A stretch of 64,000 nt of DNA, from sequence record LR535910.1; one strand, 5' to 3'. The notes under the pieces were generated by a model, which ran no database searches, was not told where the DNA came from, and was given only the letters and a program-made list of their open reading frames with translations. A program made the translations under genes and the position numbers. Position 1 is the first letter of the stretch; every line of letters begins with the position of its first letter. Below are positions 21,228 to 26,333 of the stretch, in pieces.

Positions 21228-21803
21228 ATGAACTTGTATCGCATCGGGTTTTACCGAAACGAGATGCCTGAATCGGTTTTGGTTGTCTTAGCCGAAAACG
21301 AGGAGCAGGCCAAATCCTTCTGGCCGGTTAGCGCAGAGCGTCCAGCGGTTGCGTGCTGCTACGACGGCGCTGTGTCTACCCCGATGGTTACGCCTGGGGT
21401 GGTTCTGAAGCAAGGCCGTTGGGATGATTATTCCCATCCCGGTTTGGAATTTGTTTCCGAATCCGCCAGACACACCTGGAATCTCACCACGGGTAAAACC
21501 AGAGTGTACTTCGGCCACCAAGCCAAGCAACCGTCGCTCATCAAGCTGTACCTGGTTTACAGCGACGTCGCTACCGAAGACTATGTCGACACCGGAATCA
21601 TCGTCGGGGCAACAACCCCCGAGGCGGCATTCGCACATTGGGACGGCGATAAACCCGGAATCGTTTCGGTCTGTGAACTACCACTTGAAGCCGGTTTGGT
21701 TACGAACATCAAGTGTGAGCAAGGCCAGGAGCTGACTTGGATGCGCCAGGATTACCTGACGGAAACGACATTCGAGTACACACCGAGGAAGGTGACCCAA
21801 TGA
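21228..21803 (+). CDS. Hypothetical protein with two tandem copies of a small phage domain
   Basis: GGAG SD; repeats MNLYRI...VVLAENEEQA and IKLYLV...IVGATTPEAA. Confidence 0.7.
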   Translation: MNLYRIGFYRNEMPESVLVVLAENEEQAKSFWPVSAERPAVACCYDGAVSTPMVTPGVVLKQGRWDDYSHPGLEFVSESARHTWNLTTGKTRVYFGHQAKQPSLIKLYLVYSDVATEDYVDTGIIVGATTPEAAFAHWDGDKPGIVSVCELPLEAGLVTNIKCEQGQELTWMRQDYLTETTFEYTPRKVTQ

Positions 21804-22291
21804 CCACGATAGCGTTCGATGGAAAAGTCTTGGCTGCTGACGGTCAGCTGACCCGCGGGTCGAATATCTGCAACCTGAACACCCAGAAGTTATTCATCTG
21901 CCCTTCTGACGAGGAATGGTGGATTACTGGTGAACGGATTGTGGCGTTCGGAGTAAGCGGTGACATCACAGGACAGTTGGCCTTGCTGGAAACTGTCCGC
22001 TTGAGACCCGGATACAAGGGGTTAACACAAAGCTCGCAGTTACCTGCGAAGATGGATTTTACTTTCCTGATGCTTTTGGCCTCAGGAAAAGCGATAGTCG
22101 GCGGAAAACGTGAAGACGACGTGACGTTGTGGTGGAGTGAAGCCACACCACCTCTGGCAACCGGAAGCGGTTACGAGTATGCGTTGGGTGCGATGAAGAT
22201 GGGCGCGAATGCGGTTCGTGCTGTTGAGATTGCGTCCGAATGCGATATCTACACCGGTGGTGAGATTAGCACTTACGAACTACGGAGGTGA
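21800..22291 (+). CDS. Ntn-hydrolase, HslV/proteasome beta-subunit-like peptidase
   Basis: Starts MTTIAFDGKVLAAD (N-terminal Thr nucleophile); ATGSG, ALGAM and D-I-Y-TGG motifs; ATGA overlap with the upstream stop. Confidence 0.75.
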   Translation: MTTIAFDGKVLAADGQLTRGSNICNLNTQKLFICPSDEEWWITGERIVAFGVSGDITGQLALLETVRLRPGYKGLTQSSQLPAKMDFTFLMLLASGKAIVGGKREDDVTLWWSEATPPLATGSGYEYALGAMKMGANAVRAVEIASECDIYTGGEISTYELRR

Positions 22292-22384
22292 ATCATGCGG
22301 GAGTCAGAAGCACGCAAGCTTGACCCCATCAATCGCCTGCGATAACGGGGTAGCGCATCCGTATAAACACGTTTAAAGAATTCT

Positions 22385-22460
22385 AGGAAAGTGACGCAAT
22401 TGGTAGCGTACCGGTCTCCAAAACCGGCTGTTTAGAGTTCGAGTCTCTACTTTCCTGCCA
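22385..22460 (+). tRNA. trnW: tRNA-Trp(CCA)
   Basis: Full 76-nt cloverleaf: AGGAAAG/CTTTCCT, ACGC/GCGT, CCGGT-CTCCAAA-ACCGG, TAGAG-TTCGAGT-CTCTA, encoded CCA. Confidence 0.95.
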
Positions 22461-22526
22461 CATTTAGCCAACAAGGCCATGATTCAAAGCAGAATGACAC
22501 CGAATGTCTAACTGCGGAGAATAATC

Positions 22527-22769
22527 ATGAACTTGTATTTGCTAGAACGAACTGACGATATCGGGTATGATGAATTTGATTCCATAATCGTGGCGGCTCC
22601 TACGGAGCAAGCTGCGTGTGCAATTCCTCCCGACTGTGGTCATTGGATGGACTGCCGCTGGTTACCGAAAGAGCGCTGGGATGAAGGGCTTACCCTGACC
22701 GTTACTCTTATCGGTACTACGCACTATCCTGCTGGGACCGTCGTTCATGAATCGTTCAATGCTGGCTAA
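22527..22769 (+). CDS. Small hypothetical protein, single-domain paralog of 21228
   Basis: GGAG SD; MNLYLLERTDDIGYDEFDSIIVAAPTEQAA. Confidence 0.7.
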   Translation: MNLYLLERTDDIGYDEFDSIIVAAPTEQAACAIPPDCGHWMDCRWLPKERWDEGLTLTVTLIGTTHYPAGTVVHESFNAG

Positions 22770-23043
22770 ACAGTGGGCTTCGGCCCACTAACCCTATTCG
22801 AGCCGTGATACTTACTCAGATTGTGCGGGTTGATGTCCCGCATGAGCCGGTAGCAGCTCAGACCTACGGTAGACCAATAAATCCGTAGCAGCCAGGTACA
22901 CAAAGCACCAGGTCGCTTGTACAGGATGCTGGGTATCTGACCGGTCATAACCTCATTCGATACGAGACACGTTTATGCATGAAATACTCCAGTACATCAG
23001 GATGTTGATTTCCAACGTCCGGTTCTGGGTATTCAATCATGTT

Positions 23044-23345
23044 TGGTTTACAGGCGATGGGTTTTCCCGCAAGGGCCCCACTTACAGACTGGCGTCTCCA
23101 CGACAACCGTCCCTAGGGGACAGGCAAGCACCGGCCCATTAAGCCGCTACGCTACGCCTGTAAATCCACAATCTGATAACCGAATGGGGTTGAGTTCCCA
23201 GTGTTAGGGTGACTGTGTGTCACCGTAGGCGCGGTACCTCATACGGCCGGAACGCCACGAATGTACGTGATAGCGGGTGGTGCTTGGAGGCGCTAAGACC
23301 TGACCTTGCGGCCAGGCTCAGAAGAAGAAGAAGTCCATCACCCGC
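23044..23345 (+). ncRNA. Candidate structured ncRNA domain(s)
   Basis: 12-bp closing helix 23045-23056/23155-23166, GCAA tetraloop, 10-bp helix 23273-23282/23336-23345, single-stranded (AAG)4 tract. Confidence 0.4.
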
Positions 23346-23418
23346 ATTCAGAAATGAATTTAGGTTAATTATTATTTATGGAAGTGATGAAATCGTTTAC
23401 GTGATAACTTAGTAGTAT

Positions 23419-23790
23419 GCAACGAACAATACCAGAGTGACTTTACGAGGTTACTGTGGTATATGTCGGTGCTCCGGGCAACGTGTTGCCGCAGATAAGC
23501 CCGAGGGAGCTGAGTGCACTAACACCCGCCGGGATGCACCGGCACCTTACAATGGGAGCGCTGTCACCATCAGTGATGACAGGAGTGAAGGATTCGTACC
23601 TCACTCGACTGGGCGGAAGCCTGGGCGTTCCCCCATCTTCACATCATGGCCGGCTTGCCGGTTCAACGTAGACGTCTCGTAAGAGATTTCCAGTCAGGCA
23701 ACTGATAACACACCTAAGCGTCGACCTGGACGTATGGTGTCTGGTTAAGTCCCCCGAAACGGAAACCAGTAGGGGTGTGGTACGTTGAGT
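23419..23790 (+). ncRNA. Candidate ornate ncRNA (about 370 nt)
   Basis: Begins at the G of a GTATG motif; at least 7 consecutive hairpins including a GNRA loop; no SD-bearing ORF. Confidence 0.4.
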
Positions 23791-23816
23791 GTAACTATCA
23801 TGATGCCGTGAACAAT

Positions 23817-23886
23817 GGCTTTGTAGCTCAGGTAGGTAGAGCAACCTCTTCGAGGAAGGTCGCCGGTTCGAGTCCGGTCAAAGCAA
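23817..23886 (+). ncRNA. tRNA-like element with a collapsed anticodon arm
   Basis: Acceptor GCTTTG/CAAAGC, D arm GCTC/GAGC with AGGTAGGTA loop, T arm GCCGG-TTCGAGT-CCGGT; the anticodon arm is only CCTC-TTC-GAGG; no CCA. Confidence 0.7.
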
Positions 23887-23967
23887 GAGCAGCGAAGTTA
23901 GAGGAATTAACACCCGACTCATAATCGGATATTTCGACGGTTCGAATCCGTCCGTTTGCTCGCCCCA
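23887..23967 (+). tRNA. Degenerate tRNA with CAT anticodon (Met/Ile2-type), bulged acceptor stem
   Basis: D arm GTTA/TAAC, CCGA-CTCATAA-TCGG, GACGG-TTCGAAT-CCGTC; acceptor GAGCAGCG/CGTTTGCTC with one bulge; ends GCCCCA. Confidence 0.6.
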
Positions 23968-24252
23968 TTTGTGTTACCCTTATCCCGAAGGCATTCGAAT
24001 TAAGACGCGTATCCACACACGGGTCAAGGGTAACACGAACCACTTCCGCGGTCACCGTGTCCATTGCCGCCTACCTGCATGGGCTGTCCTCCGACACGGT
24101 GACTTCGGGCCAACTTACAGGCCAGGGCCGTTTGGGTTTTTCTTACGCATCCATCCAGAGCCACCTCGCGCCCTAGTCTGTATACCCCTTTTCTGTTCCT
24201 GGTTTGCCAACTAAATCAATTAAGCCTGGTGCGTTGCCCTGGGAACAGAAAA
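23968..24252 (+). ncRNA. Three long-stem loop units downstream of the tRNA-like pair
   Basis: Stems of 14 bp (23968-23981/24026-24039), 11 bp (24051-24061/24093-24103) and 11 bp (24189-24199/24242-24252). Confidence 0.4.
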
Positions 24253-24340
24253 ACTTATTCGGTTACACACCGAACCCACCCACGAGGGATATGTCGTGGA
24301 CTACCAATAGAAGCAGCAATAGTAGTAAGAAGGAAGCAAC

Positions 24341-25162
24341 ATGTTTACAGTTAAACGTGTAATTGATGGTGACCGCATTATTACCGAACATGAAAAAGTT
24401 CGTATCGGTGACCGTAAGTCTCGTGTATTCCGCGAGGCGTTAAAGATGCTCGAGAACGAGCGATTCGACATCGTTGTCGATGATGAAAAGTTAGCCCTTA
24501 ATCCGGGGTTAAAACGCGTTGCCCCTGATGTGCCTGATCCGAACACCATGCATTTGTCTGACTACTGCAGCTGGTCGCACAGATTATATAAAAGTCAGGT
24601 TTATGCACACACGTATTTGCGGCAGCTTTTCCCCAACCTTATTATCCCCGATTTGGAAACGGTCGAGGTGTTTAACTGCAACGCACGCGAGTTTATTAGC
24701 TACGTGCTAGATAATAAGGGCAATGCTATCTTGGTACTGGACACAAATTCCCGCATACCTGATGCTGTGGCTAGCATACGCGGTGAAATCATCGGTTACG
24801 GTACTCCCCCAGAGAAATTAGGCTGGTACAAACCATCTCCTGATAGCGACATGGCGATCATTGTCTACACTCAGGAAGAACTGCAACAAGTCGAATTAGA
24901 GCCTGGTCCATCTATCGAGTTCACTGATGTCCAGGAGCAGTCGCAGTGGATTAACGGTGAGTCTGTTGTTACTGTTTTAAAAGGCGCTCGCCCTGGCGAC
25001 CGGTCAGTCGATGAACTGATTGGCGCAATGTGCATCGAAGAAGAATCTGGATACGATCCTGATAACCAGATCAGTACCGGTGCGTTGTACGAACTGTTTT
25101 ATAAAGGCGACGAAGTCTACGTGGTTAACTCTCACGGTAAGACTACCGACGTCCTTCGCTGA
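24341..25162 (+). CDS. Hypothetical protein
   Basis: 273 aa; AAGGA SD; ends YVVNSHGKTTDVLR, a pattern common in phage proteins. Confidence 0.75.
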   Translation: MFTVKRVIDGDRIITEHEKVRIGDRKSRVFREALKMLENERFDIVVDDEKLALNPGLKRVAPDVPDPNTMHLSDYCSWSHRLYKSQVYAHTYLRQLFPNLIIPDLETVEVFNCNAREFISYVLDNKGNAILVLDTNSRIPDAVASIRGEIIGYGTPPEKLGWYKPSPDSDMAIIVYTQEELQQVELEPGPSIEFTDVQEQSQWINGESVVTVLKGARPGDRSVDELIGAMCIEEESGYDPDNQISTGALYELFYKGDEVYVVNSHGKTTDVLR

Positions 25163-25252
25163 ATTAGCTAACGCCCAGTAGCTATGTTCCTGACGATTAG
25201 CCCTCGTCTGACCTTGTAAGACCTTGTAGATTTACATGCCAACACCAGGGAA

Positions 25253-25294
25253 GTCCTCACTCTTCGGAGTGAGGACAACTCTTTTATTTTTTTT
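25253..25294 (+). terminator. Intrinsic terminator
   Basis: GTCCTCACTC-TTCG-GAGTGAGGAC followed by a T-tract. Confidence 0.85.
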
Positions 25295-25311
25295 GTATCC
25301 CAAATATTCAC

Positions 25312-25331
25312 AGATAGATATTACCTAAGTG
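25312..25331 (+). promoter_or_regulatory. Putative early promoter
   Basis: AGATAGATATTACCTAAGTG. Confidence 0.7.
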
Positions 25332-25385
25332 AGATGAGAAAGCCTCATCTGAATTCCCCCAACTCGACTATAAAAGGTAAGCATC

Positions 25386-26333
25386 ATGTACAGACCAAGT
25401 AATCCTAGTGCTATTGAAGGATTAAACCAGGATGGCTTCAGCCTCGCAGAAGCAACCCGCATTCGACCTTTCTTACCTCGCAGATTCTTCCCTTTCGGTT
25501 CGTTATACAGAACGAATTTCGACGCTTGGGAAGCGATACGTGCTGTAAAAGATGCACTACAGTACAAGAACTTCGAATTCCGATTTGTTTTCAAATGGGG
25601 CAACGGCGAATTGCTCCACCACTTCGGATTCCAACAGAACGAGTTCATTGAGTATACCTCACCTACGTACCACACCAGGTTCTTAAGTATCGAATTCGTT
25701 CGCCATTTCGGCGATGCACTCTTTACGGAACGGGCTACAGATGAAAACCACGGACGTAGGCTGATGTTAACGAACGGCGCACTGCGCATCAAGATGAATC
25801 GTTTACGGGAAGCGTATAACCAGCTTATCAATCCTGAACCGGTAATGTTTCCAACTGTAGCTGATTTGAACATCACACCGCTCCAGTTACCTGTGGATGT
25901 GGATAGACCGATTCTGGCAATCCACGCTCTCCAGGCAGGCTATGCAAACTGGTATAAAGAGCACAGTCTCCCGAACACCAGATTGAACATCGCACCGTTT
26001 GAGTTGTGCCTGTTCTTAACGTTACGCAAACAGCTCGAGCCAGAAAACTTAGACTTACGTTATCTGGCTAAAACAGATAGCGGTAGTTACTACCCAACGA
26101 CCTGGATGCTGGCGGCTGTACTACCCGGCGGTGAAATTATCGGTAACCCAGTCACCGATGTTCAACAGTTACCATCACCGTTAGCACCACCGAAAGATTC
26201 AATCTATCCGTACGCTTCGTGGTACGCGAGCAGTATTGGCGTGAGATGGTTAATGTTACACGTTCCTGAAGAGGTCTATAATTTATTCCCGCATGAGCAA
26301 TGGCTCCGTGCGTATGAAAATCGGTTTGGTTAG
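25386..26333 (+). CDS. Hypothetical early protein
   Basis: 315 aa; AAGG SD; lies between an early promoter and a terminator. Confidence 0.75.
   Translation: MYRPSNPSAIEGLNQDGFSLAEATRIRPFLPRRFFPFGSLYRTNFDAWEAIRAVKDALQYKNFEFRFVFKWGNGELLHHFGFQQNEFIEYTSPTYHTRFLSIEFVRHFGDALFTERATDENHGRRLMLTNGALRIKMNRLREAYNQLINPEPVMFPTVADLNITPLQLPVDVDRPILAIHALQAGYANWYKEHSLPNTRLNIAPFELCLFLTLRKQLEPENLDLRYLAKTDSGSYYPTTWMLAAVLPGGEIIGNPVTDVQQLPSPLAPPKDSIYPYASWYASSIGVRWLMLHVPEEVYNLFPHEQWLRAYENRFG

Follow-up and report, generated by a model that had tools for sequence, protein, structure and literature searches.

Phage tRNA genes are mostly discussed as helpers for codon usage or as replacements for tRNAs destroyed by defence systems. 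In the tRNA cluster of phage T4, tandem tRNAs without encoded CCA mature together, the small, stable, non-tRNA RNAs called C and D in that phage arise from the same transcripts, and a mutation in one tRNA of a dimeric precursor blocks the making of both. The parts of a tRNA that are read by RNase P, RNase BN/Z and the CCA-adding enzyme are the 12-bp stack of acceptor and T stems and the elbow. Likenesses to tRNA are also seen in mascRNA and the MEN-beta tRNA-like RNA at the 3′ ends of vertebrate MALAT1 and NEAT1, in the t-elements of plant mitochondria, and in the tRNA-like domain of tmRNA and the bacterial Y-RNA-like YrlA. The locus analysed here holds what is, as judged from its sequence and that of its relatives, a real, conserved, non-decoding, tRNA-derived RNA gene, which two genera of giant phages have kept for a long time and which is unable to decode.

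The stretch of DNA that was analysed (64 kb, hereafter the window) comes from an SPN3US-like jumbo phage of the genus Seoulvirus. In BLAST searches the 801 bases around the element were 100% identical to phages of the Salmonella SPFM series and 95–99% identical to other SPN3US-like Seoulvirus jumbo phages. The element, referred to here as element C, is a 71-nt cloverleaf within a non-coding stretch of about 1.9 kb that runs from a tRNA-Trp gene to an open reading frame (ORF) of 273 aa, and it is followed directly by a tRNA(CAU)-like gene, referred to as gene D (Table 1).

Table 1. Position of element C, its parts and the neighbouring features in the window
Feature	Coordinates	Strand	Evidence or remarks
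Element C, anticodon-less tRNA-like RNA	23817-23887	+	Rfam tRNA match; minimum-free-energy (MFE) and centroid fold; family alignment
C, G1	23817	+	
C, acceptor stem, 6 bp	23818-23823/23879-23884	+	MFE fold
C, D arm	23826-23842	+	Stem GCUC/GAGC
C, short hairpin	23845-23855	+	CCUC-UUC-GAGG; loop UUC at 23849-23851
C, T arm	23862-23878	+	GCCGG-UUCGAGU-CCGGU
C, 3′ end A72-A73-G74	23885-23887	+	
Gene D, tRNA(CAU)-like	23888-23961	+	Rfam tRNA 30.6 bits; anticodon 23920-23922
tRNA-Trp(CCA), canonical, for comparison	22385-22460	+	ARAGORN; Rfam 63.6 bits; encoded CCA, ...CCUGCCA end
ORF of 273 aa, always after the tRNA island	24341-25162	+	
ORF of 78 aa overlapping C and D	23828-24064	-	Annotated as hypothetical protein
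AT-rich stretch	23351-23399	+	One weak sigma-70-like match at 23347-23375, not above chance
Leader AACAAT	23811-23816	+	Directly 5′ of C
Module A, structured, non-coding	23400-23548	+	In all Seoulvirus genomes
Module B, about 263 nt	23549-23811	+	Ends at ACAATGG direct repeats, 23549-23555 and 23812-23818
B1, second tRNA-shaped RNA, in module B	23554-23635	+	Part of predicted upstream fold

A first-pass annotation of 23817–23886 had described a D arm, a T arm and a 6-bp acceptor stem, an anticodon arm reduced to 11 nt (CCTC-TTC-GAGG) and the lack of an encoded CCA. All of these are present as described, the D and T arms in canonical form, the short hairpin is seen both in the sequence and in the Rfam alignment, and the 3′ terminus reads AAG instead of NCCA. 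We placed the end of the element one base further, at G74, because the next tRNA begins at 23888. The Rfam tRNA family (RF00005, gathering score 29) matched 23817–23886 over its full length with 40.9 bits (E = 3.2e-05 in the 64-kb window), and the cmscan alignment lacked four anticodon-loop positions and had a non-standard 1–72 pair. The D stem of 4 bp closes a GG-containing loop of 9 nt (AGGUAGGUA), G1 stands opposite A72 as a mismatch beyond the 6 bp of the acceptor, and the variable region has five bases in the predicted fold. The element thus has a cloverleaf scoring above the family threshold, and it lacks the 5-bp stem with a 7-nt loop bearing U33 and a purine at position 37, as well as the encoded CCA. 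ARAGORN made no call for C in the window, which agrees with the pseudogene call or absence of a call that had been anticipated, and a permissive Rfam search (E up to 10) of 21500–25500 gave three tRNA matches and otherwise noise. Minimum-free-energy and centroid predictions agree on the cloverleaf, but its folding-energy z-score of only -1.1 is not distinctive, so that thermodynamics alone proves nothing; C is more than a chance fold because of its covariance-model score and its conservation with compensatory changes in relatives.

Homologues of C were located by their position immediately upstream of D. This place is taken by a homologue in >25 genomes from Seoulvirus, Machinavirus and metagenomes, among them every Seoulvirus and Machinavirus genome examined, and the homologues amount to about 19–20 distinct sequences when the IMG/VR contigs are counted in. 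A protein-anchored search of IMG/VR added few loci, complete E. coli genomes gave no BLAST match to the 71 nt of C, and the sequences returned by a DNA-pattern search with its 5′ half were ordinary tRNAs, for the most part tRNA-Phe, with no new C-like element among them. Public records label C variously as tRNA-OTHER, tRNA-Asp, tRNA-Ile or a minus-strand hypothetical protein, or not at all, and the anticodons assigned to its homologues disagree as well: Asp in Proteus phage 7, Pro(CGG) in pSal-SNUABM-04, Ile(AAT) in Machina and Huxley, and "???" elsewhere. No published description of C was found in the literature on SPN3US-like phages and on tRNA-like RNAs, nor any transcript, cleavage or CCA-addition results in the literature on these phages, and the family appears to be undescribed so far.

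The arm at the anticodon position of these homologues ranges in length from 11 to 49 nt across the relatives, and a canonical loop is present in none. U33 and/or the purine at position 37 are absent from all of them, and no seven-base loop has both. All seven Seoulvirus haplotypes have a hairpin of 4 bp and 3 nt, with UUC, AUC or UUU as the loop; SPAsTU has a structured arm of 49 nt that ends in a GAAA hairpin (fold z = -4.0); IMG/VR contig L040 has a 4-bp stem with an AGAA loop, and L037 a 6-bp stem with a GUAA loop; pSal-SNUABM-04 has an arm of 6 bp and 5 nt, and pEa_10 and pEa_43 an arm of 5 bp and 6 nt. In the Caitlin group, stems of 5–7 bp with loops of 3–7 nt differ between otherwise near-identical phages, and Machina, Huxley and pEa_6 have added a long variable arm. 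A normal 17-nt arm in relatives had been named beforehand as grounds for discarding the element as a recent deletion or error, and the range of arms found instead indicates that the collapsed arm is not a recent deletion. A sequencing or assembly error was rejected, since many independent genomes share this collapsed arm, and so was a spliced intron in SPAsTU, as removal of the insert would leave no loop. Judging from this comparison, some helix is retained at the anticodon position, whatever its length, and its loop is free to vary.

Conservation of the remainder of the element was assessed in a MAFFT alignment of 16 C variants, of which the first 7 and the last 29 columns align cleanly. Counting pairs 2–71 to 7–66 and the five T-stem pairs, 176/176 acceptor and T-stem cells hold standard pairs, and in nine of the eleven pairs both sides have changed in a compensatory manner. 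None of 2000 column shuffles reached full pairing, and shifting the partner by 1–3 columns lowered pairing to 26–49%. The boundaries of C in relatives were partly set by requiring pairing, with independent fixes from the MAFFT alignment, the leader motif and the abutting D gene. Four acceptor stems occur, each with its own complement (GGCUUUG, GGCUCCG, GGUUUCU and GGCCUCU/GACCUCU), and G1·A72, A73 and G74 are invariant, with G2 nearly so. The T loop is always UUCRANN, with UUCRA, G52–C62 and G53–C61 invariant, and the D-loop region of all variants contains GG. This pattern indicates that selection keeps the coaxial 7+5 stack of acceptor and T stems together with the T loop and, for the elbow, a D loop that contains GG. 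The suggestion in the first-pass annotation that loss of decoding with retention of the elbow is selective holds family-wide in two genera, with every stem pair kept and most pairs showing compensatory changes; maintenance by selection rather than random decay is thus supported by the alignment. As no lineage has a canonical loop and yet all have the stems, the simplest history of C would be an old loss of decoding followed by long upkeep of its shape, and the best reading of its distribution is that decoding was lost before Seoulvirus and Machinavirus split.

In relatives a tRNA island occupies the corresponding stretch, and its content varies widely, from one canonical tRNA in SPN3US-type genomes to seven in SPAsTU and up to thirteen in Erwinia and Salmonella Machinavirus phages; the SPFM genome paper counts one tRNA per genome. 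Island tRNA genes are gained and lost fast, and most tRNAs have been lost in the Seoulvirus lineage. While other tRNA cassettes come and go between genomes, C and D were never split, and the invariant neighbour of C is this downstream tRNA(CAU) gene, with nothing invariant upstream. An encoded CCA terminates each of the approximately 80 canonical tRNAs in these islands and is missing only from C and D: D, which begins directly after G74, has no encoded CCA in any genome and a 3′ end of CGCC... The T stem and acceptor of D show compensatory changes among Seoulvirus haplotypes, and a conserved one-base bulge in the 3′ strand of the acceptor is kept through this covariation. Its anticodon loop is a canonical CUCAUAA, and the anticodon stem-loop resembles that of E. 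coli tRNA-Ile2. ARAGORN calls the D homologues tRNA-Met(cat), and Machinavirus annotations give tRNA-Ile or tRNA-Met. Unusual forms of D were noted at several loci (the window, L011, L015, L019 and L022): it has a long variable arm in ChrisDB, pEa_9, pEa_4 and pEa_6, and in Machina and Huxley C33 replaces U33. Three distant relatives from IMG/VR (L008, L009 and L014) have a D-like tRNA with anticodon AAT and loop CUAAUAA and no C; there it lies right after an HslV-like gene, at the position that tRNA-Trp holds in the window.

The 273-aa protein, whose ORF evolves fast, has no Pfam domain, and its predicted model (pLDDT 76.6) has no PDB match at E < 0.1, so no functional link to C follows from it; a Pfam search of eight neighbouring ORFs, including a plus-strand 81-aa ORF over module A, gave no matches. 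The 78-aa minus-strand ORF, annotated in SPN3US (SPN3US_0003) and in the SPLA5c, SaP7 and SPFM records, is very likely a spurious gene call, given its overlap with both tRNA-like genes and the lack of any Pfam match. Scans of the region for sigma-70 promoters and intrinsic terminators stayed at chance level; SPN3US-like phages transcribe with their own RNA polymerases, which are beyond the reach of a sigma-70 scan. That the AT-rich stretch marks the start of a transcription unit is only a guess. Just downstream of D, at 23972–24037 (plus strand), lies a long-range stem GUGUUACCCUU/AAGGGUAACAC, which recurs in Machinavirus with other but complementary sequences (GCAUUGCCCG/CGGGCAGUGC) and may be the 3′ end structure of the transcription unit.

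As to origin, 42 viral tRNAs share the 5′ half GGCUYYGUAGCUCAG..GGUAGAGC, and 23 of these are tRNA-Phe. The best match to C, a tRNA-Phe(GAA), is identical at 57/71 positions and has C72 and CCA versus A72 and AG in C, which suggests that C derives from a tRNA-Phe-like gene of class I. C retains what tRNA-processing enzymes read, and the part that is read by the ribosome and by most synthetases is gone. The reading that we prefer, tentatively and at a little less than even confidence, is that C is a tRNA-Phe-like gene turned into a non-decoding look-alike, and that it makes up, together with D, a dimeric precursor without CCA in which C is the 5′ member. A polycistronic precursor of the tRNA island would carry both; RNase P would cut at 23816/23817 to give the 5′ end of C, and its cut at 23887/23888, the 5′ end of D, would also create the A72-A73-G74 end of C. 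Both RNAs would then need their 3′ ends trimmed, by RNase BN/Z or by exonucleases, and would also require the CCA-adding enzyme of the host. By analogy with the phage T4 dimers, C would have to remain folded for the precursor to mature rather than be degraded, which would account for stems that are conserved while the anticodon is not. The fold, its conservation with covariation, the lost anticodon loop, the missing CCA and the fixed place beside D are shown by the sequences; that the pair is transcribed, cut at these sites and given CCA, and that D depends on C, is what we infer. If C is such a processing partner, the logic of a dimeric precursor can preserve a "dead" tRNA.

Some features of C sit less easily with a role as dimer partner. 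D is itself a tRNA, and RNase P should therefore cut it without C; the retention of the full four-arm shape is not explained by this model; and the invariant G1·A72, A73 and G74 are left unexplained by a purely structural partner, thus pointing to a specific factor that recognises the acceptor end of C. A second reading, which is possible but on present evidence rather unlikely, is that C acts in trans once excised, as a mimic or decoy that binds, occupies or misleads a protein reading the acceptor end and elbow of tRNA. The candidate targets, put forward with the same reserve, include host defence enzymes sensing or modifying the 3′ ends of tRNAs, the quality control exerted by the CCA-adding enzyme, or a phage protein. 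The invariant terminal positions and the near-invariant G2 would be unnecessary for simple excision and suggest a specific partner, every lineage has the four-arm shape with its GG loop and T loop and not a mere minihelix, and anticodon nucleases cannot attack a tRNA without an anticodon loop. CCA-adding enzymes reportedly tag unstable acceptor stems that start with GG with CCACCA. In E. coli, unstable tRNAs do receive such a tag (PMC5824355). On the other side, a single gene copy would need to out-compete the whole tRNA pool in order to titrate a catalytic enzyme, the free variation of the acceptor stem among four sequences argues against an enzyme that reads stem sequence, and the neighbours offer no candidate partner, the ORFs being without Pfam match and the 273-aa protein without structural relative. 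We are more doubtful still that nucleus-forming jumbo phages have a family of trans-acting, anticodon-less tRNA mimics with C as its founding member, and have similarly little confidence that the acceptor end of C (G1·A72, A73, G74, or an added CCA or CCACCA) engages, together with the elbow, a tRNA-end-reading protein of host or phage. Were C a mimic acting in trans, its target might lie in tRNA-end-targeting defence or tRNA quality control, anticodon nucleases could not harm it and the ribosome would not see it, and it would be for bacterial viruses what tRNA-like small RNAs are for eukaryotes, as well as a novel participant in the conflict over tRNAs.

That C is a decaying, functionless tRNA pseudogene, kept only through recent common descent, is improbable. 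Such a relic would fit the quick gain and loss of genes in the islands and the loss of most tRNAs in Seoulvirus, and C does score lower (31–42 bits) than canonical tRNAs (45–76 bits), with several homologues below the Rfam threshold. Stem mismatches without compensation, as expected of a pseudogene, were nevertheless not seen: no stem pair is broken in 16–19 distinct sequences from two genera, compensatory change is the rule, and the loss of the canonical loop in every lineage makes that loss old, with the stems maintained since. New and well-formed hairpins, such as that of SPAsTU, have arisen at the anticodon position. Within Seoulvirus 6/71 sites of C are variable (8.5%), each of them unpaired or pairing-preserving, versus 36% in the adjacent 273-aa ORF; the non-coding modules between tRNA-Trp and this ORF have 3–12% variable sites and the AT-rich stretch has 14%. 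Finally, neighbouring cassettes have been deleted and C never.

Similarly improbable is a role as generic punctuation in the manner of a t-element, in which C would give RNase P a handle to free upstream non-coding RNAs. The stretch 23400–23816 does fold better than its shuffles (z = -3.5) and contains conserved structured modules, and the leader motif is common to other cassettes: each C homologue is preceded by ACAAT, ACAAA or ACAAC, and the spacer AACAAY/AACAGU is found 5′ of C and also 3′ of the CCA of many canonical tRNAs of the islands. This stretch is, however, a string of separate modules and not one unit. Module A varies at 8% of sites among 15 genomes. Module B is absent from SPN3US, SPLA3, Lh1B, SaP7, JN03, SEGD1 and EC001, in which C directly follows module A, and at the module B junction SPAsTU carries an insert of one ORF plus five tRNAs. 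The upstream neighbour of C is therefore not constant (module B here, module A in SPN3US, a CCA-bearing tRNA-like RNA in Machinavirus), module B is dispensable, and no particular upstream RNA depends on C. As these neighbours differ between genomes, the earlier proposal that C releases one upstream RNA of 370 nt in the manner of MALAT1 is unsupported, the region being modular with about 263 nt of it missing in SPN3US.

The repeats that bound the module B indel (SPFM-type versus SPN3US-type genomes; also L002 around 2740) are the leader of many tRNA cassettes, and since the indel is bounded by these shared repeats, cassettes may be gained and lost by recombination between leaders. Module B contains the tRNA-shaped RNA B1, which has a terminal stem of 7 bp (GGGAGCG/CGUUCCC). 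Of its three hairpins, the last has a GGAA tetraloop where a tRNA would have the T loop; B1 is kept with compensatory changes in SPAsTU and Machinavirus, though it lies in a block that SPN3US-type genomes lack. A further non-canonical tRNA-like RNA is found just upstream of C in Machinavirus (about 2917–2999 in L004, pSal-SNUABM-04; also in L013, L016, L020, L021 and L033), in which the acceptor is GGUUCCC/GGGAAUC, GUGG-UUCAACU-CCAC resembles a T arm, and ACCA is encoded; where a tRNA has its D and anticodon arms, this RNA has hairpins whose loops are not those of tRNA. A non-coding element of about 230 nt (23125–23349, plus strand) invariably precedes the tRNA island; it is conserved at 68–77% identity in all Machinavirus loci and L037 and has the invariant motif UGGUGCUUGGAG...GGCUCAGAAGAAGAAGUCCAUCA. 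RNAalifold on nine sequences gave 50 pairs for it, 19 of them with compensatory changes, and it has no Rfam match; a 62-aa ORF is annotated over it in Lh1B and EC001. It is probably an undescribed structured RNA. The tRNA island can thus be flagged as a cluster of several conserved, unannotated, structured RNAs.

An unconventional decoder, for instance one with an alternative 3-bp stem and the 7-nt loop UCUUCGA presenting the anticodon UUC, is highly improbable despite the anticodons (Asp, Pro(CGG), Ile(AAT)) that annotators or ARAGORN sometimes give to homologues, because bodies that hardly differ would then have to decode Glu in one case and Asp or Lys in others, no homologue has both U33 and purine 37, and loops of 3–6 nt cannot present an anticodon. 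C is probably a processing partner or a tRNA mimic, and not a working tRNA.

Compared with canonical tRNA, and tRNA-Phe(GAA) in particular, C shares the acceptor, D and T arms, U8, A14 and G18-G19, the G15/C48 positions, the T loop UUCGAGU and the discriminator A73. It differs in having 11 paired-plus-loop bases (13 with flanking bases) versus an anticodon arm of 17, A72 opposite G1 versus C72, and no encoded CCA. The tRNA-like domain of tmRNA and YrlA also mimic the acceptor/T-arm half without an anticodon. C differs from tmRNA in having C3–G70 instead of the alanine identity pair G3·U70 and in lacking a tag-coding region, and it keeps a normal D stem and open 5′ and 3′ ends, without a Ro-binding stem; ARAGORN reported no tmRNA, and Rfam no tmRNA or Y-RNA match.

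In its presumed working C can be likened to mascRNA and the plant mitochondrial t-elements, although it is unrelated to either. The label mascRNA-like, applied to C at first reading, stands for the tRNA-like fold: C shares with mascRNA and the MEN-beta RNA an intact elbow and a reduced, non-decoding anticodon arm, and would likewise be handled by tRNA-processing enzymes. It fails for the link to one upstream RNA, as mascRNA ends one long upstream RNA, whereas C, from a phage of a bacterial host, has no fixed place at the 3′ end of one long non-coding RNA and is instead fixed beside a downstream tRNA. There is no sequence relation either, and only tRNA models matched C at E up to 10. The t-elements are tRNA-derived processing signals with acceptor/T-arm features read by RNase P and RNase Z (PMC1920247), a structure that C mimics; they flank mRNAs, however, whereas C, with its putative processing, sits in a tRNA island between non-coding RNAs and a tRNA. 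BLAST matches in T4-like phages were to tRNA-Thr only. In organisation, the T4 tRNA cluster with its dimeric precursors and stable non-tRNA RNAs is the nearest phage precedent for C; both members of the T4 dimers are decoding tRNAs, unlike the pair of C and D.
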